DNA of 64,000 nucleotides from Lepidodermella squamata (lineage: Eukaryota > Animalia > Gastrotricha), in contig JBLDXI010000042.1 of NCBI GenBank assembly GCA_047495785.1, positions 5,022,001 to 5,086,000 of the forward strand, in the 5' to 3' direction. Numbering within the stretch: the stretch's first letter is position 1; every line of letters begins with the position of its first letter. The notes beneath the pieces are model-generated. The model had not been told where the DNA came from and ran no database searches. It saw only the letters and a list, made by a program, of their open reading frames with translations. This document shows, one piece after another, positions 25,175 to 64,000 of this stretch. Position numbers and translations under genes: made by a program.

Positions 25175-25289
25175 ATCTTCATTCATCCAATTTTAGCATG
25201 ATATAAACGTTAAATAAAACAAATTTCATGGTCCGATGCTTTTCTAGCTCCGACTACACATACACTAGCGATGCTTTTCAGTATTAGCG

Positions 25290-34655: not shown

Positions 34656-35907
34656 TCACGACAACATTGAATCTCGGATTCGTTTCCTCGCCTTGATAAT
34701 CGCTTCTTCAACTTCGATTTTCAGATCTAGCGCTATATCAGATCTTGCACTGAGCAAAAGGTCATTCAGGGACAAACAAACTGGGTCAAAGTTCGAATTC
34801 GAATTACTCGCATAAGACATAGATTGAGGCTGTTGTTTCAACGCCATAAGTAGAGATTGAGTTAAAATCGCATTATTATCAAGCACATTCGAAGATGGTT
34901 CAACGTGATCTTTCTCCTCCTTATTGTTTCTGAGACCTTGGCCATTCACTCGCCTTTGACTCGGAAAATATGACGTAGAAGGCAGTTCTTCACTGCTTTG
35001 AGCTCGCATTGACGATGAAGTAGGGTCATTGTTAGTTCGATAATCTTCAGCTTGACCGGTGTTATTCGCGCTGGAAATTTGAGAACTGTCGAATTCGTTT
35101 TCGGACAAATCAGCCCAGGATTGTTCGGAATCTTCATCCTCCATAGCTCCAGCGGCGTTGCCCATCTCAATGTACCTATATATGCAACAGCAAAAAAATT
35201 ATGTTTGAAATAACCAACTCGATTTTTGATTAGGAAAATCGAAAATCGATTTGCCATTGCGATGAAATAAAGAGCATAAAAAAAATTCGAATAATGCATT
35301 TTTTTCACGGAGAATTTTCGGTCAGTTTTCGGATGTTAAAAACTAGATCGTTCACAGATATTTTCGAATTTGATTATTTGAATTTTAAAATAAGAAATTA
35401 TTTTCAAGAAAGAGTGAATTTAAAATTGAAGGTTCAATTGCCAAAATTTACTTGATTCTATAAAGTGTTTGAAAAATTAAAAAATTAATTACAAATGCAG
35501 TTTTATTAAAAAAAAACTTAAGAATTTTTAATTTTCTAATTTTTATATTGGACTTACTGCTCAGGTGTAATGACATCGTCCAAGAAAGCCATAGTATCCT
35601 GATGCTTCCACACCTTCCGCCGTTTATGCATTTTGTAAACAGCACCTGCATCTCCTCCACCGTTATGGCGCCGTTTTCTGTTGTACGAGCCCGTGCGCAG
35701 TTGGCCGTAGTAGTTGCGCAGGCCCAGCCACTTTTTTCGAGCCTCATCGCCGTCCTTCAAATTCAACCGCTGGGCTATTTCGTTCCAAGCTGTGTCGACG
35801 CCGTCGATTCGATTGTGACCCGGGTCTTTCGGGTCCCATAGACACGTTCGCTCTTTGACGAGCAAAATTAGCCTATGCTGATTCTCAACCGAAAGCCTTT
35901 CTTTCAT
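34656..35907 (-). CDS. MADF (Myb/SANT-like) DNA-binding protein with a possible BESS-like C-terminus; exons ~35558-35907 and 34656-35175
   Basis: LILLVKERTCLWD...TAWNEIA...KKWLGLRNYY...WKHQDTMAFLD is a typical MADF pattern. An in-frame GT-AG intron leads to an acidic/Ser-rich linker and LDLKIEVEEAI. Confidence 0.8.
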
Positions 35908-36089
35908 TTCGAAAAGCAAAATATGAAAAATGCCTGGGAAAAATCGGGAATAAAAAATTAGAGAAAATAATCATTAAAAATTGAAAGCTTGGCCTCAAGA
36001 AAGTTGAAATTGTTAGTCTCCAAATTATTATTGAAAATATAATAGTGTTAAATTGTGAGAATGAATAAAATTATTAGAATATTGCAAAA

Positions 36090-38765: not shown

Positions 38766-38899
38766 GCTCACTATTTATGCTGATAAAAAGTTGTTTTTAT
38801 GTGTGATTTTTTCCAACAGCAAAAAATCTCATTAAATTGGCGATAGCATATGCAAACGCATCGATAGGATGAAAAGCTAGTGATAAATGAAAGTAGGCA

Positions 38900-39487
38900 A
38901 TTTTTTCGCGAACCAATATTCACCCCGTCGTTGGAGGCTATGGTTGCTGTCGTCAATACAGTAGTCAAACAGCAGATGGGCTGTCTATTCGTCTCGATTC
39001 GAGCGAGCAGGCGGCTCAGATCCGATGTCTGGAAAAGATTCCTGGTGCGAAAATCATTCAAACTGCTAAGCCAAAATACCGAATTGTGTTGACCAACTTC
39101 GACACCGATGCTGTATCAACGACTGCGATCAAGGCTGCCTTTGGCGACAAGATGACTAAGATGGTCGAACTGCGCGGCAAACAAGCTATGTTCGAGCTCA
39201 ACGACTACGATCTTGCTGAAAATTGCGTGAAAAACGGCCTGATTTGCAAGCCGTTCATGTTACGATTCCGATGGTTTATTGTCAAGCAATCTGATGTTGT
39301 TCAATGTTTCAACTGCCAGCGATATGGCCACCTGGCTCGAAACTGCTCCGATGAGATCCGATGCCTACGATGTGGTCGAAAACACGACGTGAAGAACTGT
39401 TCGCGGAGTGTTCATTGCTGCAATTGTGGTGGCGAGCACACCGCGAACTCGAGGGATTGCCCTCTGCGCCGGCCCTCGGCTGGCTGA
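38900..39487 (+). mobile_element. Non-LTR retrotransposon ORF1 (gag-like) fragment with three zinc knuckles
   Basis: QCFNCQRYGHLARNC, CLRCGRKHDVKNC and CCNCGGEHTANSRDCP form the triple-knuckle pattern of I/Jockey-group ORF1. No ORF2 follows. Confidence 0.75.
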
Positions 39488-42078: not shown

Positions 42079-45000
42079 CTACAACATTGCACCGGCTGCT
42101 GTGAGAATGTCTATGGTCTTTTGCTTGTCTTCTTCCGACACATCGTCATCGCAAGTCTGGGCAATTAGCAGAGCTGTCCAGCCCTTCGACGGAACTCTGT
42201 AATTGACATCAGCGCCCAGTTCACGTATCAGAACATCTACAACAGCGTGGCGACCTTTGAATGATGCTGCCATAAGTACAGAGCGCCATTTCTGAGTTGG
42301 AGGATCTAGTAGTCTTCCAAGTTTATGTGACATTTGATTTAAAACCTCTGAGGCGAAGTCTAGAGAATTTAGGTTGGCGTTAAACCGCGAAGCTAGAAGT
42401 CTCACGATTTCAACATGGCCATCGTAAGCTGCAATGTGTAAAGGCGTTGTCCCATCTTCATCTTCTGAGTTGACATCAGCTCCGCAGTTCGCTACAAGGA
42501 GATTAACAATTTCCGAATTCCCTGAATATGAAGCAGCATGAAGAGTTGTCCAACCGTTAATTGCAGCCAAGTCGGTGCTTGCGCTGAACAACCCGGCTAA
42601 AATTCTGACGATTTCCGCGTGCCCATTCATAGCAGCGATAATCATAGGCGTCTCGCCATTCTTATTCCGGGAATTAACGTCGCAATGAAATTCCTCGGCC
42701 AGTAATTTGATGATCTCGGCGTGTCCATTCGCAGCTGCAATGTGCAACAGCGTTTCACCGTTTTCCAAAGTTGCATTGACGTCGCACATTGATTCACTTG
42801 CAGCTAAGATTCTGACGATTTCCACGTGTCCATAACCAGCAGCGAAGTGCATCGGCGTCCTACCGCCTTCTCCAGATGCATTAACGTCGCACTTTAAGTC
42901 CACAACTAACAATCTGACGATTTCAACGTATCCATTCTGAGAAGCAACGTGTAAAGGTGTCCAGCCATTTTTATCTCGCGCATTCACGTCGCAGTTAAAT
43001 TCTCGCGCTAGCAATCGGACGATTTCTACACGTTCATTCCAAACAGCGATAAACATAGGCGTCGCGCCATTCTTATTCAGGGAATTAACATCGCAATGAA
43101 ATTCCGCAGCCAGTAATTTGATGATCTCGGCGTGTCCATTCGCAGCTGCAATGTGCAACAGCGTTTCACCGTTTTTCAAAGTTGCATTAACGTCGCACCT
43201 GAACTTGTCTGCTAACATTCTAACGATTGCCACATGCCCATTCTGAACAGCGAAGTGCGCAGGCGTCCAACCCCCTTCACCACGGGCATCAACATCGCAC
43301 ATTGATTCACTTGCAGCTAAGATTCTGACGATTTCCACGTGTCCATAACCAGCAGCGAAGTGCATCGGCGTCCTACCGCCTTCTCCAGATGCATTAACGT
43401 CGCACTTTAAGTCCACAACTAACAATCTGACGATTTCAACGTATCCATTCTGAGAAGCAACGTGTAAAGGTGTCCAGCCATTTTTATCTCGCGCATTCAC
43501 GTCGCAGTTAAATTCTCGCGCTAGCAATCGGACGATTTCTACACGTTCATTCAAAACAGCGATAAACATAGGTGTCGCGCCAGTTTCATCAGGCGAATCA
43601 GCGTTGCAGTTGAAATCCTTTGCTAACATTCTTGCAATTTCTGCGTTTCCGTCCTCAGCAGCAATATGCAATGCCGTATACCCGCCTTCCACTTTGGCAT
43701 CAACGTCGCAATTCAATTCTCCTGCTAAACGTCTGATTACGTTTGCGTGTCCGTTTTGAACAGCAACGTGCAATGGCGTCAGGCGTTTTTTGCCCAGTGC
43801 GTTAACATCGCACTTATAGTCTGCTACTAACATTCTGACAATTTCCTCTTGTCCATTCAGAGCAGCAACGTGCAAAGGTATCACGTCATCCATATTACGA
43901 GCATAAATGTTAGCATTGCATGCCCCTGCCAGCAGCCTGACGATTTCTGCGTTTCCATTCTTAGCGGCAATGTGCAAAGGCGTCCAGCCACCTTTACCAG
44001 GAAGATTAACTTCGCCTTTGAATTCCTTTGCTAAAATCTCGACGATTTTCGCGTGTCCATCCTGAGCAGCGATGAGCAACGGCGTTGCCCCATTCAGAGT
44101 ACGTGCATTTACGTCGCAATGATTTCTCCCCGCTAAAATTCGAACGATTTGTGTGTGGCCATCCTGGGCAGCGTAATGCAATGGCGTCCAGAGATTTTTA
44201 ACCTGGGAATTAACGTTTCCATTGAATTTCTCTACCAACAATCTGACGACTTCCACGTGTCCGTTTTGAGCAGCAATGTGCAATGCCGTCCTGCCATCGT
44301 CCAGAGCGGCTTCAACGTCGCAATTAGACTGCCCAGACAATACTTCGACGATTTTAACATGTCCACCCTGAGCGGCGAGGTACAAAGGCGTGGCACCATG
44401 CATTTCCCGAGCGTTAATATTGCCCTTAAACTCTTCCGCTAGCATCCTGACAATATCGGTCTGTCCTTCCTGAGCAGCTACGTGCAATGGCGTCGCGCCA
44501 TGTTTATCCGGAGCATTGACGTCATACCTGGCCTCGGCTAGCATTCTTACAATTCCCGCATGTCCATTCTGAGCAGCGATGAAAAGAGCGGTGGCGCCTT
44601 CCTGATCTGATGATTCCACACTGACATTAAGTTCCCGTGCGAGCAATCTGACGACTTCAGTGTGTCCGCGTTCAGCAGCGACGTGAAGAGGAGTTAGGCC
44701 AATTTCGGGCTGAACTTCAACCTCGCCGCCAAAATCCTCCGCTAGCATCCTCACAATTTCCGAGTGCCCATTTAGAGCAGCAATCAACAAAGGCGTAGCA
44801 TTGCTTTTGTTCCTCGCGTTAACATTGCAGTTGGATTTCCCTGCTAGAATTCTGACGATCTCCGCGTGTCCATTCTGAGCAGCAATGTGCATTGGCGTCC
44901 AGCCATCTTCATCTTGCGCATTAAGGTCTGCCTCGGGAATCTCTGCTAGCATACTGACAATTTCAGTATTTCCATTGTGAGCGGAAATGTGTAACGGTGT

Positions 45001-48000
45001 CAAGCCTTCTTTGCCTTGAGCATTTACGTTGCCCTTGAACTCATCAGTCAGTATTTTCAGAACTTCAGCGTGTCCAAGTTCAGCTGCCAGGTACAAGGAC
45101 GTCCAGCCTTCCTCCGCTGTCTCATCAACGCTGCTCTCGAAATCTTTGGCTAGTAATTTCACGACATCCAGGTTGTTATTCCGTGCTGCAAGATGTAACG
45201 GAGTAAATCCCATCAGCGTTTTACTGTTCACTTTTATGTGTGAATTCGCGAGAAATTTGACGACCTCGGTGTGACCCCCCGAAGCTGCCACATGCAACAA
45301 AGTCATCCCGCGTCCATCCTTAATTTGCACGTTTGCTTTCTCGCCTGCTAGTAGTTTTACGACCCTAGCATGTCCGTTTTTGGCCGCCGCCCATATTGGT
45401 GTCTCATCATCCCTTGTGGGAGAATCGATACTATCGCGGGAAACATTGGCCAGAATGCTTACAATACGAAGATTTCCGATATTCGCAGCTGCGTAGATGG
45501 GAGTTCTACCCATTAGGTCTTCGGATAGCGGATTAGCATTGAAATTCGTTATCAATAGGTCAACAATTTCCTCTTGTCCTTCTTGTGCAGCTAGAAACAA
45601 TGGGGTCACGCCTTCGCTGTTTTTGCAGTCCACGTTTATATATGAGCTTGCTACTGATAACAATGCGTCAACTTTTTCTGTTTCGTGCTGTCCTATTAGG
45701 CGGAAAAGTCTCTGAATGATAATAATTGATAATAAACAATTATTTTGTAATCATTAAATGATTCGCTATTACTTCTTCAGCTTCGCTCAGGGCGGGGAAA
45801 TCATTGTCAGAAGTTGTTTCCGTGAGTTTTTCGACGATTTGATCTTCTGTCAAAGAATTTTCCGTAGGGTTAAGCAGAGCATGCGGCGGACCGCGCTTTA
45901 AGCTGTTTTTTTCTCGAATCATCCTCATAATTGTTGATTGGAATTGAAATGAATAGCCGCGAAAAGCGTCGAAGTCTTTTGGATGGGACCTGCGAGTGTA
46001 AGGAGCTGATAGCAAAGATAGTATTCAATATTCAATAATTGAAATTTACCAGACGATCGCCAGGGTGGAATCAAACTAAAAATAACTGTATTTGAGAACA
46101 TTTTAAAAAGACTCAGAGATTGCTTACCGGCAAGTAGAAATTCGCCAGCTCGAACAATGTTACGCCCAAAGACCACCAGTCGCCTGCCTGTGAGTGATCC
46201 ATCTTCTCGAAATGTTCTGGGGGCTTGTAAAGATTTGTGCCAAGCCCCAATGATCGCCGTTCGTCTCTCGGAGAGCTTTAGAGATATTAATTTGTGTGCA
46301 TTTAGAGCATTTGCGGAACACTAAGTTATTTTTTAGTGCAAAAACGGTGCATAGAAATTTCGAAAAAAATTTTCTCTTTATAGAATAGTCTAAAATTCTA
46401 TGCTCTGTTTTTTGCATTAAAAATCTCAAAGAAGAAACATCTCACAAAAACAGTTAATTACCTTTTGTAAATTTTAGCCAACCCGAAACCTCCTAGCTTG
46501 ACAGAGGTGCTGCCATGAAGAAATACATTCTTGGGTTCTATTGCGCGATGAAGGAATCGGTTTTCGTGCAGCATCGCCACAGCCGAAGCAAGCTGCCGGG
46601 ACCAATTCAACAGCAATTCCTCGGGAATGGGCGCGGTTGAGTTCTTCACGTAATCATTTAAATTTCCATCACAGCAATATTCCATTACAAGATTGTACAT
46701 TGCGCCGACAGGACCAACCTCTTCACAATATGAAATATGGAAATTTATTCATTTTTACATACAGATTGTGCCCTGACTGACCAGCAAATGACCCGAATAC
46801 AGACACAATGTTAGGGTGACGGCAATCGATCAGTTTTAGATTCTATACGATAAAACGCATAAGTGAATTTCAAAAACCAAAAAGCTTTTATTACCTCGTT
46901 TCGGCTTAATTCAATCAATCGTTCGGCAAAACTAGGGTCTTTATCGAAACTTTGGTAAATTGAGCCGAGGTTGAAAGCCTTTACAACATAACGGCCAACG
47001 GTTTTGAGATGCCTGCACAGTATCGTTGAGCCGAATGTACCATTCCCTAAGTCTTTTTCACGTTTGAACTCGAGGATTGAGGAAAAAGCCGACTTCTGCA
47101 CTTTCGCTACTGGCTCTTCGATCGTCTTTACTTTTGTAATGAATGGACTGCCTAGAAGTTCAGCAGCCGTTGCTCTTAAAGAAGGGTCTTTAAGGAGCAT
47201 CGAGAGAACAAAGCAGGAGTACTCCTCGGAATAATTTCGATCTTTGTCAAAGATTTTTGGCTCCTTCCTGGGAATGAGAACGGGAAAGGTAGGTTCAGCC
47301 ATAAAGGGCTTATTTTCGAGAGAAAAATTCATATACTACGCGAGCCGCAAGTTGTACTCTCGCCCACCCCATGAGCATTTCAGGGTTGAAATTTCTTTCA
47401 GATAATAGTGCGTTCACAAACTACTTCGGAGAGGCGTCCGAAGTTTTCGGCCACCGAAGTTTCGTAACAGGCCTCCGAAGTTGCGTAATCGCTGCCCGAA
47501 GTTTAGATTTTCGTTCACAAACGCGCGCACTTCGGCCAGCGCCGCCGAAGTTTGAACAATAGGCGGTGCGCGCGCACCGAACAAAGGACGCGCACAAACT
47601 TCGGTTCGGAGAGCCCCAAAACTGCTCTCCGAAGTGCCTCCGAACCGAAGTTTGAGCGCGTCCGAAGTTATTACGCACGCACGCAAACACGCGCGCGCGC
47701 ACACAGCCACTTGACCACACTGTACCAGGCGCCTCAAATTTGTCTTTCCGGTGATATTTTCATTGAAAATGCGATCCGTTTCATTAGCCATTAAAAAATT
47801 ACATAGCAATAGTGATAAGCATTAGATACTGAGAAATTAATATTGCAAAAATTTCCGGTTTCGAATGGCGAATTTTTAAATCTAGAAATTGCGCGGCTCG
47901 TATGGAAAAAGTGGCTTTGATGAGAATGCGCGAGAATATTTTAGCAAATATTTTTTATAGCGAATCAGGTGAACTGAGCGCTGAAATTTAGCTTCTTTTT

Positions 48001-49320
48001 ATCCTCATCAGAAGGCGCGTCTCATTATGCAAACAATTCGGAGAATTAAGGTAAAATGGAAAAAAATTGCATTGACCCTGAGTAAGAGCCATACCCGGGC
48101 GTGGTGTGTGAGCGAGCGGCCAAACTTCGGCCGCGAACAATAGAAACTTCGGTCGTCACGCTGCGCGCGCGCGTAGAAAATGTCACTGATAAGGCCGCCG
48201 AAGTTTTGCTATTTCTCTCCGAAGTTTCTACTTCGCTCTCCGAAGCGGTCGGTCTCCGAAGTAGTTTGTGAACGCACTATAAGGGGTTTAGCCTGGACAT
48301 TTTCGCGAGGATATGCCTTACTTTCATGTAACACGTCTAACCTACCCCGTAATATCACCTTGGATATCAAACTGAAAAAAAGGAATGACTTCAGATTGAA
48401 AGAGCCGAAAGAGCTCCTAGCTTACTGGCTTGAAGAAATTTGCCAGCTCGAAGAAAGTAACACCGAGAGACCACCAGTCACTCGCCTCTGAATTTTTCTT
48501 GTTAAAAAAAGTTTCCGGCGCCCTGTAGAATGCCGCGCCAAGTCCAATCAATGAGCTGCTCGCAGCCCTGCCAAAAAAAGAATTCAAGCTTCTCTCAACG
48601 TGCTATGCCTGTTATCAGAACTCACATGTCTGGAGGGGGTCTCGCCAGGCCAAAATCGCCAATTTTAACAATTCTCTCGTCCGCGCATAAGAAGATGTTA
48701 TGTGGCTTGATGTCACGATGCAGCACGCCGTGGCTGTGGATCGTATCGACTGCTGACACCAACTGGCATGCCCAACCGTGCAAGACCTCTTCGGGTATTA
48801 CCTCGCTGGCTTCTTTTTTTCGTTCGATGTAACCTGCCAAATCACCATTTGAACAATATTCCATGAATAAGCAGTTAATCTCGTTCCCGACTTTCCAATC
48901 GAGCCCCTCAACCGGTTGCTGCAAACATTCTACAAAGCATTTAGCATTTAGCTGTTTTGGGATTGGATCTATTGCTAAAGTATACCTGTGTATGCGTCAA
49001 TGATGGTGACGATGTTTTCATGTTTCAGTTTCCTCATTATTTCGTACTAGAGCAGTGATATCGTTGCTATCATTGATAAGAATAAAGTAATTATTTACCT
49101 CACGATGGTTCATCTTTCTGAGCTTCTCCGCTATTTTCGCACCACTCTTCGCTTTGCTTTCCCTATGAATCTCGTCCAAATTGACAACCTTTACCACGCA
49201 GTCGTCACCAACAAAATCATCATCCGTCCGCTGACATAGCCATGTATAACCGAAACTTCCTTTTCTTAATTCTTTCTTTGCGATGACTTTTGTTGATTTC
49301 GATATGTATGCAGCCGCCAT
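42079..49320 (-). CDS. Gene K1: NEK-like Ser/Thr kinase + pseudokinase + about 34 ankyrin repeats (terminal exon 42079-45711)
   Basis: Kinase 1: KGSFG, VVK, MEYC, HRDIKPHNIFL, KIGDFGLA, YRAPE, SDWWSLG. Kinase 2: GNGTFG, YVVK, HRAIEPKNVFL, KLGGFGLA. In-frame intron 45712-45772 joins EAEE to RLFRLIG and the ankyrin exon. Confidence 0.85.
47406..48279. mobile_element. PIF/Harbinger-type MITE in a K1 intron, same family as 6747-7522
   Basis: 27-bp TIR TAGTGCGTTCACAAACTACTTCGGAGA and TAA TSD. The first ~300 bp align with 6747-7060. Confidence 0.88.
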
Positions 49321-50091
49321 GGCAGGTAAATTACGCGTAGCCCTTTAAAGGTAATATAAATATCTGCTTTTTAAGTAAAAAGGCATAAGTAATAAGTATT
49401 ATTATTTTCGGAAACTTGGCCAATGCTCGGTGACATATACTACAGTCGAGAGTCAAATACATGTGTATATATTGGACATAGGGGAGGAAACTTGAAAAAC
49501 CGAACATATTATGGCCGAGCCGTAGGCGAGGACATTATTTTTGAGGTAATCAAACGCTGATTCGGTCGATTTTTTGCCGCCGGATCTTCGCGTCAAACTG
49601 GCACGCTGCTACGTTGAAGAATCGCACAATTGCTCGTGCAATTTGAACTATCGGCTCGTCAAATCACCCTTACTCGGCGAGTGCATTCGGCTCACGGCAG
49701 TTACAGTTCGCCGGACTGGTCGAATCAAGCTCAATCATGTTATCGATCCCGCTCGAGGAAGCGTGCCGTTGAACCGATTGGAGTCGGGAACGAATGGCAC
49801 GGAATCCAAGACGAATATTGTGGTCATTTCCAGGAGGAATGCTGCGCGATTTTCTCTACTGCTACTCGGATTCCGCGGTGGAGTGCTGGGTTTTATCGAC
49901 ATCGGAGCTGACTGATGCTCGATTTTCACGGAAGTGAGGCCGAATGCTTCTCAATTTTTTGGTATCAGGGATGAATGCTGCCAGATTTTCGAGCCGCGCC
50001 AGCTTTTTCCATGAGATTGTTTGATTTTTAATAGTAAAGCTATTTTGGGTTCTTCGGGTTTTTTGGGTGTCATGAGTTTCATGGGTCTTAA

Positions 50092-50474
50092 CACTTTAAC
50101 TGCCAAAAATAGGCTGCGAGGTCCGATATTTGGACCTAAATCCTGGGTCAGTCAAAAAGTCCTGTTTTTCGGGTCAACGTGAAATTTAGATTGTTGCGCC
50201 ATAATCTGGGTCCAATAATTAGGTCCAATTCTTGGGTCTGATTTTTGGCTCTAATCCAAAATTTCACTGTTTTTTAACTGCCATTTCAGAGACCTGCTCA
50301 GACTTCATGGCCCCGAGTTCGGTGTCAAAAGAACCGCCGGGTCATGGCCTACATTTTGCCGTCAGGCATTTAGCCCTACGACGCATCGTAGACCCGAAAA
50401 ACAGGACTTTTTGACAGACCCAGGATTTAGGTCCAAATATCGGACCTTGCAGCCTATTTTTGGCAGTTAAAGTG
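50092..50474. mobile_element. TTAA-targeting (piggyBac-like) MITE with ~85-bp TIRs
   Basis: TTAA|CACTTTAACTGCCAAAAATAGGCTGC...CGGGTC is inverted at 50391-50474 and followed by TTAA. Confidence 0.85.
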
Positions 50475-50609
50475 TTAACAGGAGTCCAATACTATGTGCT
50501 CCTCCTTAAAAAATTAAGTGTCCAATATGTGAAATTATGTAAACATATAATAACATATAGACCTAACATCTACTTGCCTTAGAGGTTTATATGTTAAATG
50601 AAAGTAATA

Positions 50610-50806
50610 TCGCGCCTTCCGCGCCAGAACAGTGTGCCGGAAATAGAAACGAATGGCGTAATGCATTTGATGCGCAGAAAAAACTGGCGTTCAACATTTT
50701 TTCCAGCTATCAGGCACGCGACAAGGAACTTGGCGAAGATGCAAAAAGTTAGTTTTACGCCATTTGTTTCTATTTCCGGCACACTGTTCTGGCGCGGAAG
50801 GCGCGA
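50610..50806. mobile_element. TA-targeting (Tc1/mariner-type) MITE with ~52-bp TIRs
   Basis: TA|TCGCGCCTTCCGCGCCAGAACAGTGTGCCGGAAATAGAAAC... is near-perfectly inverted at the right end and followed by TA. Confidence 0.8.
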
Positions 50807-51287
50807 TATATGAATATTATGAACTAGAAAAATTCGCTTCTTATAACAAATTCGCGATCTGGACTTATTTCGAATCAGTCGAGCGTGAATATGTTGTATG
50901 CATGGGCCAAGAGTTTTAGCGGGGTTAACGACCAAAACGAGGGTTTTTATAAATCCTGACTCTGTGTGCCTTTCTTATCTTACCTCATTCGAATAGCATC
51001 ACCTATCGGCTTGTCAGCTGCTTGATAAGACCCCGCGGAATGTTGAAGATAAATTGTAAAGCGTCAGCTAGCGTCAAATATTGCTATCTTTTTTCCTTAT
51101 TTTATCGAGCCAATTTATCAGAAATGCAATAGAATAGCACAATATCTTAGTTGTTGCGCGACAGGTAATTGCAGCTTTCTACGCGCGCGCTGCAAAATCA
51201 CAAGAGAACCACAAGTCTGCTAGCCCGAACTGAACAAGTCCAGTATATCATGTGAAGCACGCGCATCGAGAGTTCATTTTTCAATTA

Positions 51288-51461
51288 CAGTAAAACCTGT
51301 TATCTCGAACTCTGTGAAGGGCGAAAATCTGTCATGTCGAACACTTTTCGTAGAACCGTCTATAGTTCACATAAGCTAAATTTCTCTCTCTATGCCGAAA
51401 CTCTCTGTATGTCGAATGCATTTTTCGGAACCGTAGCCTTTCGAGATAACAGGTTTCACTG
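51288..51461. mobile_element. Tigger/pogo-type MITE
   Basis: TA|CAGTAAAACCTGTTATCTCGAA ... TTCGAGATAACAGGTTTCACTG|TA. Confidence 0.82.
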
Positions 51462-51897
51462 TAGCACCAAATTTCAAAAAAATGCAAATGAAGAAGATAT
51501 GCTAGAAATAACGATGCCTTACAATCGACAGGTGCTTAAAAATATTTACAAGTAAAATAAAATCGCGCCACCATGTTTCATCATGATATTATGTCGCTTT
51601 TTTGAAATCGCAATTCTCTACATTTTTAGAAGCGCCTGAGTTCTGATGATTCTAAGGAATTTTGATGAAATTATACCCCAAATTCACCGAAAATAGCTCG
51701 TAGCTCGTGCCATCAGTACGCGCTTTCGCAATTCGTTAGGTGAAATTCGAATTTAGCGCGCCACTATTTATTCTATTTTCTATTTAATCGATAGGTACAC
51801 TTAGCAAAAAAAGTCCGGTCCCTCCGCCTCCCAATGATAAAAATAAATTATTTAAATAAAATAATATAATTTTTGTGATATATTATTTTATGGGTCA

Positions 51898-52360
51898 AGC
51901 TATTCGTACATAACTATGTACGCGAAAATTGCTATTCGTACATAGTATGTACGCGAAAATTGCTATTCGTACATAGTTTTTCGCGATTTTTAAGCAAGGT
52001 GTGGAAATTCGAAAATTGACGGTAGCATCATGAAATTTTACAGGTAGACGCATCAAAGTGAGAGCTATTTAGTGGCTAAATTTCCTTGGATCATCACCAA
52101 ACGTGTTCTAGTAAGCGTCCCAAAACTGAATCAGATTATACAGCGTTGCGACTCTAGCATAGGGGTTCCATGCGTGATTTTTTGAGGGGTGCTAGACCTG
52201 ATACTCAGCTATGCGCACGCAAAAAATTAGACTAATCGGGTGCAAATTGAGAAAGTTATTGATTTTAGAAATTTCATTTTAAGTTATGTACGTAACATAA
52301 CTATGTACGCGAAAATTGCTATTCGTACATAGTTTTAAAATGAAATTTCTAAAATCAATA
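51898..52360. repeat. Short tandem repeat with a fold-back hairpin
   Basis: The unit GCTATTCGTACATA..TATGTACGCGAAAATT repeats at 51900-51980 and ~52295-52335. A perfect 26-bp inverted pair TATTGATTTTAGAAATTTCATTTTAA spans 52257-52360. Confidence 0.7.
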
Positions 52361-52463
52361 GCTCGCCGAGAAGGTTCTTCAACCAGCAACGACAAAACAA
52401 AACATTTGAACTTCTCTGAATAATGTCGGTCGTTATTGAATTGTTTCGGGTTTCGGTTCATTC
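52360..52463 (-). pseudogene. Orphan kinase C-lobe exon fragment of the K family
   Basis: After a TTTTCAG acceptor it reads MNRNPKQFNNDRHYSEKFKCFVLSLLVEEPSRRA, homologous to K1 KEPKIFDKDRNYSEEYSCFVLSMLLKDPSLRA and K2 NEPKPFDANRHYSEEYKCFVLSML. Confidence 0.7.
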
Positions 52464-52604
52464 CTGAAAATGGTATCGCATAGATTGCGCACACAGTTAG
52501 GCGATTTTAATCAGGAATCCTTTTTTCAGATAGGAACAGAAACGTTGCAACTATGGCAGTTTCGCAAGGACATGACTTACTTGTAGTTGCCCCGTAGTAT
52601 CACC

Positions 52605-55006
52605 TTAGCTATCGAACTGTGACCTGTGTTTAGGCTGTGACCTGGCTTTGTTTTTGTGCCATTTATTTTTCTTTTTGCCTTGATTTTCCATTTCGTGGCG
52701 TTCTGCCTGGATTTTGGACTTTTCGCGATTTTCATTTAATAAAATTCTCAAATCTGGCTTTTCAGCCTGAGCTTTCATTTCATCAGCTCTTTTAGTTTCA
52801 TTAATTTCGTTCAAAAATAACCGTAAATCAGGTAAAGTTTTCTCATAGCTGGGTTTGACCTCGGCTTTGCCTGCCGATTGTTGCTGTGCTGTTGTTGTTG
52901 GAGCGTCGTCCTTTCGCAGTTTGGCACTTGCACTAGTTGGAGGGTCTCCACGATACGGCATCAACCTATCTCGATGAACTTTCTGCGTTTTTCCTTCGCC
53001 GTTAAACAATATGATTTCGTACGTTGTCTCGCCTATCCGGCCTAGCACTGTGTACGGACCTTGCCACTGGCTGGCAATTTTCCGTGAGCAACCAACCGGA
53101 ACGACCTGGCTATGTAGCCATACAAGCTGGCCTCTTTCAAGTGGCTCTGCGTTGGCTTCGAGGTCGTAGCGCTCCTTATACTTGGCTTGCGCTTGGGCAA
53201 TCCTTAATCGCGCTTCATGATAAGCTGTGCGCAATCTTTCGGTAATTAATTTTGCATATTCGCTGTAACTGCCGTAGTCCATTTTTGGCTTTAACGCATC
53301 AAATGGTTCGCGTTTCAATCTGCCGAACATCATGAACGCCGGCGAGTATTGAGTTACCCGATGGTTGGCCCCATTATAGCATGATACCACTCCTGGAAGA
53401 TAGCTACACCACGATCTCTGCGATGTTTTATCGCTCATAACTTTCGATAGAAGAGTTTCCATAATTAGATTTCCGCGTTCCGCGAAACTGTCACCTCTAC
53501 TGTGATAGCTCGTGGTGCGAGTTCGCTTAACATTATAGGCTTTACACAAATCCTGAATGACTTGGCTGTGTAAGTTGGGGCCTTGATCTGAGTGAAGTGT
53601 TTCAGGAGCTCCAAATAAGTCAAAGAATTGCTTCAATTTCTCGGCAATTAGCTCTGACGTAGCATTTGGCAATGGAACTGCGTATAGCCATTTTGTGAAC
53701 GAATCAACAATGGTCAAGATGTGTTTATTCCCCTTGTCGCTGATTGGCAAATCCATTAGGTCCATTGATACGAAAGCTAGTGGTTCAGACGCGGGTAAGC
53801 TCTGCATTGGCGCTTTTTGCTTCTGAACTCGATTCCGTTGGCACGGAATACATTCTTGGACATATTTGGTAATGTCCGATTCATAGCCTGGCCAATAGCA
53901 AGATGTTCTAACTTTGCTAAGTGTCTTGTCTAGGCCAATATGCGCCTGTTGATCATGGAAGATATTTAAGACTTCAGATCGGAGAGACACTGGTTCGCTT
54001 TCTACAATAATCGTCTTCCGACTGAGCTAATTTCAGGTTCTCCTGTGTGATCTTCATCTCTTCGGGCAAAACTAGATAGATTTTGCCACGTGGAGCCTTC
54101 TGGTTATTCTGCTTCCTACGTCTCTTCTTATTCCACTCCTCGACCTTAGGAACTACGTTCTCGCTCTTTTTCTCGGCTGCGGCTACTTTCTGGTCCTTTT
54201 TATCGAACTTCTCATTGAAAAGGATCAACTTGGCGTCCTGCTGTGCTTGTTTAACTGGGTCATCGAAGTAATGAGGTAACCTGGATAAACAATCTGGACC
54301 GGCCAAAAGTCTCCCAGGCTTGTGTATAATTGAGAAGTTGTAGAGCGATGCGTACCGAGCAATTCGCCCTAGCTTACTGAAGGCATCTTTGTGCGTTAGC
54401 AGCGTGGTATTTGCTGCGTGATCCGTTACTAGGTCAAAATCTGTGCCTGGCGGTGTCGTTGGAATTGATAATTCTTTCATTTTCAGATATGGGGAGAAGA
54501 ATTTCAATGCTACGCCTATTCCAATCGCCTCCCGCACGGTTGTAGATTCACCTTTTTCCGCCTTGGTCAAGGGTCGGGAGAAGAACCCAATGACCTTAAT
54601 TTGGGACTTGCCGTTTTTGTCGTGCTGGCGCTGCATGAGGCATGCTCCGATTCCTACGCCGGAAGCGTCCACCTCCAAGATGAAGCGATCCTTCGGATTG
54701 TTGTATGTTGGGTACCCTAGCACCACCGCTGCCACCGCTGCCACCAAATATGCAGACCTTGGTTTTAGATGCAAAAGTCACCCTCGATTTCAACGCAACG
54801 AATAAGATTTTATTTCTAGTACTTTCCCTTATATAGTCTGCGTGTTTACATTCTCACTTCAGTACAATCTTAGTGCATGCATATACAATGTGCTGCTCAG
54901 TGCAAAGTCTGTGAGTCTTTGAGTCTTCGGGTGTGCTGTGGAATTCGTTGAGTTTCAGGGTCTGCAAATGCCTTTTTATTTATCCAATTATTTGAAAGCT
55001 GTTACA
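52605..55006 (-). mobile_element. Internally deleted Gypsy/Ty3 LTR retrotransposon: 5' LTR (54751-55006), PBS, RNase H and integrase
   Basis: LTR runs TGTAACA...TGCA. PBS TGGTGGCAGCGGTGG at 54732-54746. RNase H FILEVDASGVGIG and TDH; integrase HHCC, VSMDL, HSDQGP, AER and WQGPY. No gag, protease, RT or 3' LTR. Confidence 0.9.
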
Positions 55007-55007
55007 C

Positions 55008-58000
55008 TCAACAGAAGGCACTATTCACGTTGCTTCTCCTGGCTAATATTTCCACGATTTCTACGAATCCATTTTTGGCCGCGAGTTGTGAAGGCGTCAA
55101 ACCATCCGCGTTCGTAACATTAACGTTGGCGTTGAATTCCTCTGACAGAACTTTGACCGCTTGCACGTGTCCATTCTGAGCTGCAAGGTGCAAAGCCATC
55201 CAGCCACCTTCCGCAGGGGCATTTACTTCGGCCTTGAACTCCCCGGCTAATGCTCTTATTACGTCTTCGTTGCCTCTCAAGGCAGCGAGATGCAAAGCAG
55301 TTAATCGTAAGAGCATTTTAGCGTCCACTCCGACTTCCTCTTTGTATTTTGTGGCCAGAAGTTTAACAACTCCGACCTGGCCTTCCAGAGATGCGAGATG
55401 CAGCAAGGTCATGCCACGGCTATCCTTCTTTCTTACGTTTGCTCCTGTTTCTGCCAGTGACTTAACAATCTTAACGTGACCGTTTTTGACTGCCGCCCAT
55501 ATTGGTGTCTCATCACTGTTTGTCGCAACATCAATGCTTTCGGGTGAAAATTCGGCCAGTATTTCGACGATACGAAGATTGCTGCTGTTAGCGGCTACGT
55601 AGATGGGAGTTCTACCCAATAGGTCCGTAGCCAAGGGGTCAGCTTTGGACACCTTTAGCAAAAACTGAACAATTTCCTCGTTTTCTTCTTTAGCAGCTAG
55701 AATCAGCGGCGTCATTCCTTCGCTGTTTTTGCAGTTTACTTTTATAGTTGGTTCTTTGGACAATAACAACAATTCGATATTTTCAGTTTTGCGCTCCCTG
55801 ATTAGGCGGAAAAGTAACTGAATAAAAAGATGACAAGTTCACCTTTCATAATCACTGAACAATTCGTCATTACCTTTTCAGCTTGGCTCAGTTCTGGATT
55901 TCCGTCGGCAGCTCTTCCCGCAAGCCGCTCAAGGATTTGACCATCTGATAGAGAGTTATCAGTTGCATTGAGAAAGGCTTGTGGTGGCACGCGCTTCGAG
56001 CTGTTTTTTTCGCGAATCATTCCCATGATCGCGTTTCGAATTTTAAACGAATAACCGCGGGGATTTTCGAAATTTTTCGGTTGATTGCTGCACATGTAAA
56101 AAGTTATTCATAGGACGAGATGTCAAAATCGTAACTTACAATACGATTGCGAAGGTAGAGTCAAACTAAAAATAAACTGTTTTGAAGAACCTTCTACATC
56201 AGGAGCGGAAATTACTCACAGGCAAGTAGTAATTCGCCAACTCGAACAAGGTTACACCTAAAGACCACCAGTCGCTCGCCTTTGAGTGATCGTTCTTCTC
56301 AAAATGTTCTGGGGGCTTGTAGAGATTTGCAATTGGTCGCCTTTCGTCTCTAGGAGAGATTTGTGGCATCAATAAAATTTCGAATCAATCTCACATTTGT
56401 ATGATATAGTACGAGTGTTTCATTTATATCTGAGATTCGTAGCACGAGATGCGGGCATGTTGACGAGGCGGAGCCGAGTCGACATGACCAAATCGAGTGC
56501 GGAGAATCCAGATATGAATGAATTACGAGTGCTATATCGTAAAATATTGCATGAGCATGGGTACTGACTCTATATTTTTTGAGCGAATGCTATATTTTTC
56601 ATCGTTGGTGCTGCGGGTGTGACTTTTTTCATCCGACCAATGTGCTGCTTAAAGTCCAAAGTTGTTAATATTGAGCATAAAACCAATTTTGTTTTCAAAA
56701 AAATATATATCCATAAGGGTTAATCAAACCGAGCGGATCAATGTACCGGCCATTTTAAAAAATGATTCACCGTAATTTAAATATCGCACTCCCTATTATG
56801 TTTGATCTGGCAGGGCCATTCTGATGCCCTGTTTGAACTCGTGCGGTGAAGTGAGGACTTCTGTATTCGGAAAATGGAATGGGGGTCATGGCGAATTTAG
56901 AGCTGATGTTTTCAGATTAAAAAACTGAGTCATCAGCCATTAATCGCAATATTGATTTTGGATGGAGGTAAGACTTTTAGATGCGCTGGCGACCATTTCA
57001 GATTTCAGACATTTCAAGCAGGGCCGGATTAACGCATATGCACAGAGGGCACGTGCCCAGGGGCCGCCAGTCAGAAAGGGCAGCCAGAAAGTGGTGAGAT
57101 GTTCACTCTTACTGAACATTCCCGGAAGATTTTTGGGCCTCTATTAGGTCGTTATGCTTTGCAATTGAGAGCCCCTCCAAGCATCCGGATCAGCCCAATT
57201 TTCATTTTGCTCAAAATTTGCTCGCTTCGCTCGCTAGTCGTCAACTGTTATACAGTTTATTTCATCATTACTACCCCTATTCAATTCATTTTCACCAAGC
57301 GTAAAAATCAATGAGAGCTGAACCCTCTAGCCTCAATGTTTTCCGAGTCAACTTTATCAGAATGAAACAGGAAAAGCAAGGATTTTTCTACATGAGAGTC
57401 TCAGGAATACTGTTGGAAAATTTCTCGCTTCGCTCGTGGTAAGGTGACAATATTGCCAAGTTGCAGATATTTTGTTAGAAAATCGAAAGCAACATCACAA
57501 CATCAACTCCAGCTATGTGAGCAATGTTAGGCGGCTTGTAGCAACAAAATACCAAAGCAAAATTAAATTATAAAAGGAATTTTTGCTTTTGAATCTCTAT
57601 TCCATCAGGAAATTGAGAAAAGTAACTTTAATCATGGTTTCAGGTATGAAAACCTTATAGTTTTAGCGAAAAAATATGAAGAGTAGGGCCGCCAACCAGA
57701 AAGTGCCCAGGGGCCACCCGAATGTTAATCCGGCCCTGATTTCAAGTAGACCATACCTTTCATAAATGTTGGCCAATCCGAAACCTCCGAGCTTGAAAGA
57801 GGCGCCGCCATTGAGAAATATATTCTTGGGTTCTATCGCACGATGAAGGATTTCGTTTTCGTGCAGCATTGCCACAGCCGAAGCTAGCTGTCGGGACCAG
57901 TCCATCAACAAACTCTCGGCAATGGGCGCGGTCAATTTCTTCATGAAATCATATAAATTCCCATCACGGCAATATTCCATCACAAGATGGTAAGCGCCAG

Positions 58001-59701
58001 ACTCTTCGAAAATAAAATGGCTTATACTATTTCATGCAGATTTTGCGAATAACTTACCGTCGAATGAACCGAGAACAGAAACAATATTAGGATGCGACAA
58101 ATTCACCAGTTTAAGATTCTATCCAGTATGACATCTTTACACGTAACTTTTGAGATTGACTAAGCAGCTTTACCTTGTCTCGGCTTACTTTGATAAGCAG
58201 TTCGGCAAAATTTACATCATTGTCGTAACTCTGGTGAATCAGGCCGAGGTTGAAAGCCTTAACAACATAACTTGCGGCGTCTTTGTATCGCTTGCACAGT
58301 ATTGTCGAGCTAAAAGTACCAGTTCCCAACTCCTTTTCACGTTTGAACTCGTTCATTGAGTTAAACTCCAACTTCTTCGCTCCTGCTACGGGCTCTTTGA
58401 TTATTTTCTCTTTTTTTATGAATGGACTGCTCCGCAGATCAGCAGCCGTAGCTCTCCGGGGGCCACCAGCAGCTGTATCACTCTGGGGCGTATCTTTAAC
58501 GAGCATTGATAGAACGAAGCATTTGTACTCCTCTGAATAGTGTCGGTTTGCGTCGAATGGTTTCGGCTCATTCCTTAAAGTGACATAAGCGTCGAAAAGG
58601 CTTATTTGGAAAGTGTTTTAAAAAATGGAAATATCGTGGCGTTCAATTTTTTGCTGGTTATTTTAGGGTGTCATTTTTGTGAGATGATGCCTGATAATAC
58701 TTCTAACTTACTCGGTAATTTCGCCCTGGCTGTCAAACTAAAACAAGTTGGAGTAATTTGAAATTTTCTTCCTAAACGAGTGCTTAAAAGCTTACTGGCA
58801 AGAAGAAATTGGCCAGTTCGAAGACAGTAACACCGAGAGACCACCAGTCACTCGCCTCTGAATTGCTCTGGTTACAGAAAGTTTCAGGCGCCATGTATAA
58901 CGGTGTGCCAGGGCCAGTCAATGAGCTGCTCGCCGACCTGCGAAGCAAGGAATTCAACCTTTTTTAACTGTACTATGACTGTTATTAGAACTCACAGGTC
59001 TGGAGGGGGTTTCGCCACGCCAAAATCACCAATTTTAACAATTCTCTCGTCCGCGCACAAGAAGATGTTATGTGGCTTGATGTCACGATGCAGCACCCCG
59101 TGGCTGTGGATCGTATCGACTGCCGACACCAACTGGCATGCCCAACCGTGCAAGACCTCTTCGGGTATTACCTCGTTGGCTTGTTTTTTTCGTTCTATGT
59201 AGCCTGCCAAATCCCCGTTTGCACAATACTCCATCACCAAGTAGTAAATCTCGTTCCCGACTTTCCAATCGTCGAGCCCTTCACCCGAATGCTGCAATAA
59301 TAATTCTGAAATAGATTGTTAAATGTATTGTGAGCTTTGATGCATGGATTAATGAAACCTGTAAATGCAGCATAGACGGTGACGATGTTATCATGCTGCA
59401 GCTTCTCCAATATTTTGTGCTGATGCATAATAAAAAACACACATCGTTAAAGATACTATCGAATCTTTTATGTTACCTCACGGCGGCTTGATGTCACAAG
59501 CTTCAGTGCGCTATAATGTACACCGCCGCTCTCCGTTTCATTCTTCTTCAGAATCGTGTTCAAGTTGACACCCTTCACCGCGAAGTCTTTACCAGCAAAG
59601 TTGCCATCTTTCGGCCTACATAGCCATACGGAACCAAAACCTCCTTTTCCCAGCTGTCGTATTGTTTCGAATTGGGATATTGATGTGAATGCAGCCGCCA
59701 T
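55008..59701 (-). CDS. Gene K2: NEK-like kinase + pseudokinase + about 7 ankyrin repeats
   Basis: GKGGFGSV, FAVK, HRDIKPHNIFL, DFG, GTPLYMAPE. Second domain GTGTFS, HRAIEPKNIFL, KLGGFGLA. Splice AEK|LLFRLIR into the ankyrin exon; same exon structure as K1. Confidence 0.85.
56396..56545. repeat. ~150-bp imperfect hairpin repeat in a K2 intron
   Basis: Arms TATGATATAGTAC / GTGCTATATCGTA, TTCATTTATATCTG / CAGATATGAATGAA and CATGTTGAC / GTCGACATG surround GAGGCGGAGCCGA. Confidence 0.7.
57019..57738. mobile_element. hAT-type MITE in a K2 intron
   Basis: 15-bp TIR CAGGGCCGGATTAAC and 8-bp TSD ATTTCAAG (57011-57018 and 57739-57746). Confidence 0.88.
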
Positions 59702-61597
59702 GTCGAGTAAAGTACGTGTTGCCTGCTGACTCCAAAGTAATTAGCTGTTTTACAATGTAAATGACTGCTATCCAATACGGAGCCAACTTATAGGCAGCGC
59801 TACGCTAATGAGATAAGAAACACGGGAGAAAAATGCAGATTAGATAATTCTTGGTTTCAGCGTAACATCGCTGAGTTTCCTGGTCTTGGGTTCAAGTCGT
59901 CTGATAACACCCTGCGAAGATTCTGTTGAGTTGGGCAAGGAATTTCCTGGTCATCTCGACCCTTCTGCAGGGCAACAAAAAGTAGAGAAAGTCCAATTGA
60001 TATGACACGAATTGAAAACCCGGGGCTAAAATCTTCAGCCGCCAAATTCAAACACGTTAACCTAATTGAGTCGACCAACCTGAAGATCATTGAACAAGCC
60101 ATTCTTTGATCGAATTCATTTTTTATTCAATTTCATGCCGAATTTTCGACAATAATCGAAGCGTTCACATTGCCGTTCCTTCTTCAATTACGTGTATCAT
60201 TCAGTTCATATCAAGCGATCCCTTTATGCTTAGTATTTTCCATTTCATTCATCATTGAGATAACTCGCGAGCAAAAAGTTATCGGAGAAAGGCAGCGCTG
60301 AGAGAAAGAAGAAATAATCAATTTTTACTCGAATAAATTCCACTGCATATTTTACAAGTGCAACATATATGGGGGAGAAATAATTCAGCAAGAAATAAAT
60401 ATTTGCAATCATCAATAAATTATTATAACAAGGGTTTAACCTCACAATAAAAGGGGTCAGGATAACAAATTAGAATCCATTGTTCTCTCTGTCCAATTAT
60501 CATCGAGAGCGAAAGAGCGAATAATTGTTGTTGTTTTCCGAAAGAAAAATCACGCAGAATGAAGCTGGTACGGAATTTTCGGTCATTTCCGGCGACTTCA
60601 ACCCGCCCGGTGCCAGGTCGAGCGTGACGGCGCTGATGAGTGAAGTCGAGCGTATCACGGCGAACAGCTCAACGTCCTGCGGGCCCAGCGTGAACAGCGG
60701 CGGCGAGTTCGGCTCGTCCAGCGACGAAATCAGCGACTTGGCCCGGCACGAATCGGCCCCGGACGAAATCGGGCTCACCGGCCCACACGAACTGGTCGAG
60801 CGTGTCAACGAGAGGCACGACGACGAAACGGCCGGGCGGTGCTCGTAGGGGAAGGCCGCGCCTTTAACCACCCCCAGCAGCGATTTATCAGCCAGGCACC
60901 GTTCCAGCTTAACGAGCTGCTTCGGTGCAGTCAGACATATCGAGAGGGACACGTGGCTCGGGGCGACACGCATGACTGTGTCCTGCCCGCAGCAGCTGGT
61001 TTGTTCCGTTGTTCTGACAAACAATGACGAAAAACAACGAGCCGACTATACATAGTATCGATGAAAGCGCACATGAGAGCATCGACGCGATGAAGTTACC
61101 GCAAGGTGCAAAGGAAAGGCCGGTAAAATTATCTTTGGATTCTCATACCACCTGTACTCAGCGCTTAATCAGGTTAATCAGGGTCACTATTAATGTTCAA
61201 TCAGCTTCGCTCTAAGCCGACTCACGGTTTGCGACACTAACCTCGGCTAGGACATTAACCACGGTCCTAGCAATGCCGTTTCTAGCGTTCAATCTCGGGA
61301 CGCGTGATTTTTCTTGACACTTCACCCGTGATATGGCTAAGGGTGTTGGTAACATGAGGTTGTACGTGTAGAAGCTGATATAATTTTATACAATTTCGTT
61401 CCAACTATTTTACACCAATCGGAGCGTTCTAATACATAGTCATTCTCTACGTGCATCATTCAGTTCATTTCAAGCGATCGCGTAATTTCAGTTGTAGTTT
61501 TCGTTTCATCTAACGAAATTATGCTGGAGATGTCAGCGATGTTCCGAAGAAGAATTAGAATGGATGATTGTTCATGATTATAAAACAGCTACCAGGC

Positions 61598-63881
61598 TTA
61601 ACATCTACTGATTTCCGAGTGTTTATTTCGGCCAGGTATGTACATAGCTATCGAGCTCATTTTATTCGCAGAATTAAAGGCGGCGCCACCTTCCCCAGCC
61701 AGAATTTTAACAACTTCCGCATGTCCGCTCCGAGCAGCGATGTTCTTGGGAGTGAAACCCTCATTATTAGCAGCGATTTCGTCGGCTTTAAATTCCCTTG
61801 CTAGAATTTGAACAACTTCCGCGTGTCCGCTCTGAGCAGCGATGAATAAAGGCGTAGACCCATTTCTGTTAGCAGCATTAACGTCAGCCTTAAACTCTCC
61901 AGCGAGAATTCTAACGATTTCCCCGTGACCGATTTTAGAAACGACGTGCAAAGGAGTCCAACCATGACGATTCGTAGCATTAACATTACAGTTAAATTGT
62001 CCAGCTAGAATTCTGACAATTTCCGCGTGTCTATTCTGAGCAGCAATGTGCAAGGGCGTCCAGCCATTATTATTAATAGCATTAACATCAGCTTTAAACT
62101 CTCCCGCTACCATCCTGACGATTTCCGAGTTTCCATTCTGAGCAGCGATGTGCAACGGTTTCGACCCATTACTATTCGCAGCTTCGACGTTGCATTTAAA
62201 TTGTCCAGCTAGAATTCTGACAATTTCAGCGTGCCCATTCTGAGCAGCGATGTGCAAGGGCGTCCAGCCATTATGATTAATAGCATTAACATCAGCTTTA
62301 AACTCTCCCGCTACAATTCTGACGATTTCAGCGTGTCCATTCTGGGCAGCAATGTGCAGGGACGTCCAGCCATCCACCTCCGATGCCTCAACGTTGCAGT
62401 GGAATTTTCCTGCTAACATCATGACGATATCAGCGTGTCCACTTTGAGCTGCGAAGTGCAATGGCGTCCATCCATCTTTCTCGCTGACGTCAACGTCGCA
62501 ATGGAATTCACCTGCTAGCATCCTGACGATTTCAGCGTGACCACTTTGAGCTGCGATGTGCAATGGCGTCCACCCATTTTTCTCCTCGGCATTAACGTCG
62601 CAATGGAATACACCTGCTATCATTCTGACGATCTTAGCGTGTCCATTCCGGGCAGCGATGTGCAACGGTGTCGAGCCATTCATGGTAGCCGTAGACAGCA
62701 CATCAGCCTTGAACTTCATTACCAATAATTGAACAATGTCGTCATGTCCTTCTTGAGCGGCTAAACACAGCGGCGTTAGGCCGTCGTTGTTATTACAGTT
62801 CACGTCAATCATTAAAGTTTCAGCCGACAACAGCAATTCGATTTCTTCGGTTTTGTGTTGCCTTATTAGGCGAAATAGCAACTAAATCAAATGGTAGCAC
62901 ATTCATTGATAATCATAGAAAAATGTGATAATACGTTTTCTTCTGGGTTCGGGTCGAGAAATGCAAGATCTCTATTGTGAGCTGTTTCCCTGAGTTCATT
63001 GAAGATTTTATCCGTGTTTTGTTCTGCATTAAGCAAATCCAGCGGTGGCACGCGATGCGAGCTGTTTTTTTCACGAACCATTCGTATGATGATGTTTCGG
63101 AATGCAAACGAATAACCACGAGAATCATCGAAGTCTTTCGGAGGATTGCTTCATAAGTAAGAAGGTAATTCACAAGGCTACATATTAAAAACTTCCATCA
63201 AAACTTACAGTATGATTGCCAGGGTAGAATCAAACTGTACAAATTATTTTCAATAAACTTGAATTCAAAGGAACAGAAATGTCTTACAGGCATGTAGAAA
63301 TTTGCTAATTCGAACAAAGTTACACCCAATGACCACCAGTCGCTTGCCTGAGAGTGATCTTTCCTCTCGAATAATTCCGGAGACTTGTAAAGATTTTCGC
63401 GACTCCCAACCTGTCGATGTTTCTCCCTTGGAGAGCTTTGCGGCACCAATATGACAGTATAGGAAATTGTCAATCCCAAATATCATTACCTTTCGTAAAT
63501 TTTTGCCAACCCGAAACCCCCCAGCTTGACAGACGAGCCGCCATAGAGAAATATATTCTTGGGCTCTATCGCACGATGAAGGATTTCGTTTTCGTGCAGC
63601 ATTGCCACAGCCGACGCAAGCTGCCGGGACCAATCCATCAGCAAATCTTCGGGAATAGGCCCGGCCGATTTCTTCATATAATCATTCAAATTTCCATCGG
63701 AGCAATATTCCATTACAAGATTGTAAATTGCGCCGACAGGACCCATCTCTTCAACAATTAAACCGTTGAAAATATTTTTTCTTCATAGAGATTTTGCGGC
63801 TGACTTACCATCGAATGTCCCGAAAACAGCTACAATGTTAGGGTGCGATAAATTTACTAGTTTCATATCGCTCCTTTTGCC
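61598..63881 (-). CDS. Gene K3 (partial; 5' part beyond the window): pseudokinase + about 11 ankyrin repeats
   Basis: LSHPNIVAVFG, MEYCSDGNL, HRAIEPKNIFL, KLGGFGLA, YKSPE, SDWWSLG. Splice PEEN|LLFRLIR into the ankyrin exon, as in K1 and K2. Confidence 0.82.
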
Positions 63882-64000
63882 CTATAAAGTAACTCTTCCC
63901 TTTTCCCCACCCATTTTCTGTTGAGAAGGCGAGTTTTTGCCTCATCGCTTAATGCATTATCGCGGCGCGCGGCAGTACTTTTATTGTAAGAATGCGCGGC

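Follow-up and report, generated by a model that had tools for sequence, protein, structure and literature searches.

Kinase–pseudokinase–ankyrin paralogues in the gastrotrich Lepidodermella squamata: a candidate family of partner-gated kinase switches

Structure of the K1, K2, and K3 genes

A 64,000-nucleotide stretch of the Lepidodermella squamata genome (Gastrotricha; GenBank assembly GCA_047495785.1, contig JBLDXI010000042.1, positions 5,022,001–5,086,000; hereafter, the window, to which all positions refer) contains three neighbouring minus-strand paralogues, K1, K2, and K3, encoding a kinase domain, a pseudokinase domain, and an ankyrin array in that order, with the first kinase seen in K1 and K2 (Table 1). 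We interpret them, with a probability of roughly 0.55, as soluble kinase switches gated by a partner, belonging to a lineage-specific family that evolves by birth and death. The exon models were obtained by reading the minus strand in three frames, and splicing was inferred from the genomic sequence alone. K1 and K2 each consist of 12 exons, encoding 1823 and 883 amino acids, respectively, and K3, the 5′ part of which lies beyond the window, is covered for its last six exons (at least 663 amino acids). No internal stops were found in any of the three models, and these open exons bear out a preliminary description of the locus as three adjacent paralogues of one architecture, for the 3′ part only in the case of K3. 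All 27 introns have GT–AG boundaries and 23 of them are 52–61 nt long; the two longest carry transposon insertions. The Pfam kinase and ankyrin domains fall at the expected places. In K3, the acceptor of exon 7 stays in frame but lies 12 nt upstream of where K1 and K2 splice, and the intron before it (>118 nt) runs out of the window, so the first kinase is not covered in K3. No hydrophobic 19-mer exceeds 1.4 in K1–K3, indicating that the proteins have no membrane helix.

In K1 (49343–49320) and K2 (59723–59701), a splice acceptor is located 21–24 nt before the ATG, and the sequence downstream is similar in the two genes and differs in phase. These sites would fit a trans-splice acceptor or an acceptor in the 5′ untranslated region. 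The idea that the adjacent retroelement had cut K2 short was considered and rejected, given that its last repeat is of the capping type, as in K3, and that an AATAAA motif occurs 27 nt past its stop codon.

In all three copies, the ankyrin exon follows a phase-0 intron of modal length (61, 56, and 53 nt in K1, K2, and K3, respectively), as expected from the earlier claim that the pseudokinase-to-ankyrin splice is conserved. Coding conservation starts at the acceptor of the ankyrin exon, before any ATG (the first methionine is at residue 67, 35, and 24), and the tails produced by reading through into the last intron (10–23 amino acids) are unrelated among the copies. On these three grounds, the kinase pair and the ankyrins are very likely encoded on a single transcript. 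Alternatively, the ankyrin exon might be a separate cistron, in an operon with trans-splicing, with the kinase pair ending within the last "intron". The weak donor preceding the ankyrin exon of K3 (GTATTA) is in its favour, but all three copies agree in phase, donor, and modal intron length, and the cap and first repeat show a ratio of nonsynonymous to synonymous substitution rates (dN/dS) of 0.26–0.30, which, with the conservation ahead of any ATG and the unrelated tails, makes this arrangement highly improbable.

Kinase and pseudokinase domains

The first kinase domain of K1 and K2 contains the motifs HRDIKPHN and DFG. In K2, the glycine loop, β3 lysine, αC glutamate, HRDxKxxN, DFG, and GT..Y.APE are all present, and K1 keeps the lysine, glutamate, HRD, and DFG. 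The translations of the second domain read HRAIEPKN and GFG in K1, K2, and K3, confirming the loss of both catalytic aspartates in every copy and the retention of the β3 lysine in K1 and K2. The catalytic-loop asparagine is also kept, and the αC glutamate is retained in K1 and replaced by lysine in K2. A pseudokinase is recognized in sequence by the absence of at least one of the β3 lysine, HRD aspartate, and DFG aspartate; the second domain lacks both aspartates and is predicted to be catalytically dead. CASK is a known case in which GFG takes the place of DFG (PMC13519141).

Among solved structures, NEK1 was the top match for both N-lobes (P0046, the database relative described below, E 4e-24; exon 6, E 4e-4) and the top single-kinase-domain chain for exon profile A2. 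The best matches of exons 3 and 4 were GCN2 and PKA, respectively, and no RIPK was found among the top solved-structure matches of the kinase exons. The N-terminal domain had been described as a NEK-like kinase with intact HRD and DFG; the motifs hold in K1 and K2, with K1 less canonical, and "NEK1-like" seems a fair label for the kinase domains, although the match to NEK1 is best over the N-lobes only.

The first kinase and the pseudokinase are 37–41% identical, and the series of intron phases 0,1,2,0,2 occurs in both domains with matching exon sizes. In a tree constructed among 143 other kinase domains, the first kinase, the pseudokinase, and P0046 formed one clade (support 0.994), and the three pseudokinases were monophyletic (support 1.0); the tree was built without labelled references, and the K family occupied its own long branch. 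The shared intron phases, matching exon sizes, and clade support show that one old internal duplication and a single loss of catalysis both preceded the split of the paralogues.

Ankyrin arrays

Each array is encoded in one exon, in which an N-cap helix pair precedes TPLH-type repeats of mostly 34 residues. The K1 array has 32 regular repeats and ends in about 2 degenerate ones, whereas K2 has 7 repeats and K3 has 11, in agreement with the single-exon counts of about 34, 7, and 11 reported previously. For the K2 ankyrin exon, eight helix pairs stacked in a regular solenoid are predicted (mean predicted local distance difference test score, pLDDT, 92), and this model matches DARPins and ankyrin-B. 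The K2 array is approximately collinear with K1 repeats 1–7; repeats 1–4 are orthologous between K1 and K2, and K3 has only repeat 1 in common with them. Array length changes by block duplication. The K1 array contains an exact 258-nt duplicate at a spacing of 513 nt (5 repeats), which could be an assembly artefact, and a 67-nt duplicate at a spacing of 411 nt, and the K3 repeats are homogenised, not diversified.

Selection and family turnover

The dN/dS ratios, calculated with the Nei–Gojobori method and bootstrap intervals, were 0.38 (0.27–0.55) for the kinase, 0.27–0.32 for the pseudokinase, and 0.43 (0.27–0.68) for the kinase-proximal ankyrins, with all confidence intervals (CIs) below 1. 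At 0.27–0.32, the pseudokinase is therefore maintained under purifying selection and is not decaying. In the distal repeats, the framework positions had a ratio of 0.28 (0.22–0.35), whereas the DARPin-type face positions evolved about 2.5 times faster (0.69, CI 0.50–0.97). No dN/dS ratio above 1 was found on the binding face in this comparison, which used 20 disjoint repeat pairs from three genes and has low power; the face signal represents relaxed constraint at positions that are variable in most ankyrin arrays. The earlier picture of a conserved module coupled to a fast-changing surface is thus weaker than stated: the face does evolve faster than the framework, but the proximal ankyrins behave like the kinases (0.27–0.38), and no ratio exceeds 1.

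Between K1 and K2, exons 3–4 and intron 3 match much more closely than the remainder of the two genes (Fisher p=4e-5), with intron 3 being 78% identical vs 57% when shuffled, and exon 8 of K2 and K3 shares an identical tract of 50 nt. This excess identity and the identical tract point to gene conversion among the kinase exons. Together with block duplication and one dead copy, gene conversion indicates that the K family has undergone birth-and-death evolution.

Database relatives

Database searches were run exon by exon, and a profile of the catalytic-loop exons was compared with 1.84 billion representatives. The profile returned mostly unrelated multi-kinase proteins with 24–40% identity, which could conceal single-domain relatives scoring less than about 95 bits. 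An ankyrin array preceded by two kinases occurred in none of the best 150 matches. The layout was also not described in the literature searched, coverage of which is incomplete. Both results agree with the previous statement that no described family of the NEK, pseudo-NEK, and variable ankyrin type was known. The junction exon by itself had no match among the proteins searched, a result that, owing to a length filter, does not bear on full-length relatives. Metagenome, viral, and prokaryote contig scans returned generic kinases or nothing, leaving a horizontal origin unsupported, and the atlas matches were generic only.

The only relative in the databases was P0046 (45% identity to the first kinase of K2), encoded by a partial gene on a 1.2-kb genomic contig (L001) from run SRR21279729. 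This gene (L001:602–1171) is without introns 1 and 2 and ends after DFG, at the phase-2 intron that the K genes have there too. The match, ending at the shared intron, suggests that this type of kinase is present in at least one other short-intron organism, where it is known from the first-kinase part alone. When P0046 was used as a query, only P0046 itself was recovered, but the cut-off applied (E≤1e-25) was too strict. The gene starts about 125 nt past the stop codon of an upstream gene to which it is unrelated, a distance like that within operons, and an AG lies about 24 nt ahead of its ATG, like the K1 and K2 acceptors.

Decayed copy, transposons, and neighbouring genes

The dead copy is a remnant of a fourth paralogue between K1 and K2, flanked by a long-terminal-repeat (LTR) retroelement fragment and a small inverted-repeat element. 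The locus had been called a tandem cluster rich in transposable elements (TEs), and about 24% of the bases in the K cluster are indeed TE-like, compared with about 3% elsewhere in the window, in a rough count based on self-similarity and Pfam. Upstream of K1, the intervals 50088–50809 and 51899–52363 hold a 31-bp tandem unit and nested inverted repeats (92 bp at 97% and 55 bp at 98%), and these are probably further elements resembling miniature inverted-repeat transposable elements (MITEs). Between K3 and K2, GC-rich open frames without a Pfam match occupy both strands at 60503–61045 and are flanked by a 104-bp direct repeat (60121–60220 and 61384–61479).

Elsewhere in the window, two further ankyrin-containing open reading frames (ORFs; 6167–6595 and 11086–11862, minus strand) are unlike the K arrays in their DNA. 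A very divergent Band-7/prohibitin-like gene (12181–12971, minus strand) shows a frame change near 12500 and an acidic tail end, and had no database match at E≤1e-60. The minus strand also carries an open frame of more than 630 codons with an ANF_receptor ligand-binding domain (2–1903) and a MADF-domain ORF (35557–35970), and a zinc-knuckle ORF on the plus strand (38897–39484) is probably derived from a retroelement. Small, secreted-looking, Cys-rich paralogues are clustered on both strands at 13300–23000, and several nucleoside-transporter-like and Rh/ammonium-transporter-like genes, judged by translation only, are located at 3159–3696, 23025–27237, and 28372–34431.

Table 1. Positions of the K genes, the decayed paralogue, and the transposon-related features in the window
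Feature	Position	Strand	Basis or remarks
K1 gene	42079–49320	−	Kinase, exons 1–6; pseudokinase, exons 6–11; ankyrin array, exon 12; exon models and Pfam
K1 exons 1–6	49320–49099, 49046–48986, 48929–48626, 48567–48426, 48371–48346, 47267–46895	−	
K1 exons 7–12	46842–46782, 46720–46462, 46275–46128, 46075–46050, 45989–45773, 45711–42079	−	
K1 ankyrin array	42079–45711	−	Single exon; N-cap, 32 regular and about 2 degenerate terminal repeats
K2 gene	55008–59701	−	Exon models; first kinase fully canonical
K2 exons 1–6	59701–59477, 59419–59359, 59305–58996, 58937–58796, 58737–58712, 58573–58174	−	
K2 exons 7–12	58118–58058, 58003–57757, 56349–56220, 56165–56140, 56087–55874, 55817–55008	−	
K2 ankyrin exon	55008–55817	−	N-cap and 7 repeats; predicted solenoid
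K3, 3′ part	61598–63881	−	Exon models
K3 pseudokinase exons	63881(63869)–63809, 63748–63490, 63435–63288, 63234–63209, 63148–62935	−	
K3 ankyrin exon	62881–61598	−	N-cap and 11 repeats
Decayed fourth paralogue	52360–52607	−	Exon 5 interrupted by an in-frame stop; intron 5; beginning of exon 6, carrying a frameshifting insertion
LTR-retrotransposon fragment with RNase H and integrase, lying between the remnant and K2	52608–54777	−	Pfam
MITE-like insertion, K1 intron 5	47403–48280		28-bp perfect terminal inverted repeats; related copy at 6744–7525
hAT-like insertion, K2 intron 8	57020–57737		15-bp terminal inverted repeats; 8-bp target duplication

Proposed function and alternative readings

Before the paralogues diverged, an internal duplication took place in a NEK1-like Ser/Thr kinase gene. 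In the second copy, both catalytic aspartates were lost, in a single event, while purifying selection kept the fold. The conserved intron very likely joins this pseudokinase to a single-exon ankyrin solenoid, the length of which changes by block duplication. In the switch that we propose, the ankyrin groove would bind a protein partner and so choose the substrate or location, and the N-terminal kinase would provide the output by phosphorylation. The pseudokinase, between the solenoid and the kinase, may serve as a non-catalytic spacer or an allosteric relay and may still bind ATP via its β3 lysine, and the partner may differ among the paralogues through array length and face residues. As precedents, JAK and GCN2 are regulated in cis by a tandem pseudokinase, and RNase L shows ankyrin–pseudokinase coupling (PMC13519141). 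One point that weighs against this proposal is that the first kinase of K1 carries two non-canonical substitutions, an arginine for the first glycine of the glycine loop and GA for GT in the P+1 loop, with loss of the threonine. Replacement of the P+1-loop threonine can lower kinase activity.

The partner-gated switch overlaps with two other readings. Turnover and the analogy offered by tandem kinases of wheat, Lr41 among them, raise the tentative possibility, along the lines of the preliminary description, that the proteins act as innate receptors inside the cell; a foreign ligand on the ankyrin array would then relieve the inhibition of the kinase by the pseudokinase. The range of array lengths from 7 to about 34, the faster evolution of the face positions, and the TE-rich tandem cluster with turnover and conversion are consistent with such a role, as is the wheat Lr41 kinase–pseudokinase, which has C-terminal fusions and the kinase activity of which is raised by an effector (bioRxiv 10.64898/2026.02.17.706082). 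However, the dN/dS ratio of the face does not exceed 1, the K3 repeats are not diversified, no executioner or NLR gene adjoins K1–K3, and plant tandem kinases bind the effector by the kinase or pseudokinase itself, not by a repeat domain (same preprint). It seems unlikely that the genes belong to an animal counterpart of the plant tandem-kinase immune receptors, that is, a large NEK-derived kinase–pseudokinase family that would use recombining ankyrin sensor arrays for intracellular non-self recognition.

The second reading, which we consider rather doubtful, is a Giardia-like one, in which the ankyrins would direct domains of NEK descent to cilia, basal bodies, or the cytoskeleton, and the turnover of copies and repeats by unequal crossing-over and transposons would be largely neutral. 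The NEK1 matches of both N-lobes and the fact that every measured dN/dS ratio is below 1 speak for it, but exons 3 and 4 match GCN2 and PKA best, and structural adaptors seldom differ five-fold in repeat number between close paralogues. In Giardia, 133 of the 198 Neks (67%) are followed by 1–26 ankyrin repeats, most Neks are inactive, and deletion of the ankyrins shifts localisation; the authors saw this association in no other species, and no immune role has been shown for the expansion (PMC3218828). This expansion, missed in the preliminary description, is the closest precedent for the K family. The two have in common a kinase domain at the N-terminus and, after it, a variable ankyrin array, but the Giardia proteins are those of a protist and have one kinase domain and TALM-type repeats, whereas K1–K3 are intron-rich animal genes with two tandem domains and TPLH-type repeats, most of them 34 residues long, a likeness without demonstrated common ancestry.

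Other known systems resemble K1–K3 in part. Plant tandem kinases (Rpg1, Yr15/WTK1, and Lr41) are soluble proteins with a kinase and then a pseudokinase in one chain and no membrane helix, but they bind the effector with a kinase-fold domain and need a helper NLR, and the C-terminal fusions of Lr41 are MSP and WD40; the likeness is one of analogy only. Plant tandem kinase proteins have a receptor-like-kinase ancestry; the best matches of the K domains were instead NEK1, GCN2, and PKA, and both domains cluster together. JAK and GCN2 also place a pseudokinase beside an active kinase that it regulates in cis, but the pseudokinase is N-terminal to the kinase, the genes are conserved and low in copy number, and the sensor domains are different. 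RIPK4 and ANKK1 share the N-terminal kinase and C-terminal ankyrin repeats, but these vertebrate single-copy genes have one TKL-group kinase and a fixed repeat number, whereas K1–K3 encode two kinase domains. RNase L couples an ankyrin domain via a pseudokinase to a catalytic output, in reverse order and with a nuclease output and a small-molecule ligand. In the oomycete Achlya hypogyna, P0016, P0076, and P0119 carry several kinase domains and ankyrin repeats per chain, but with ankyrins before each kinase and domains only about 28–32% identical.

The combination in K1–K3 appears to be new; each part and the principle are already known. The family shows a pseudokinase born by internal duplication, an event still recorded in the intron phases. 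Its paralogues also form a natural series in which a single kinase module bears from 7 to about 34 repeats. Were the immune reading true, these genes would represent an animal receptor class convergent with the plant tandem kinases; if it is false, they would be an animal parallel to the unexplained Nek–ankyrin expansion of Giardia.

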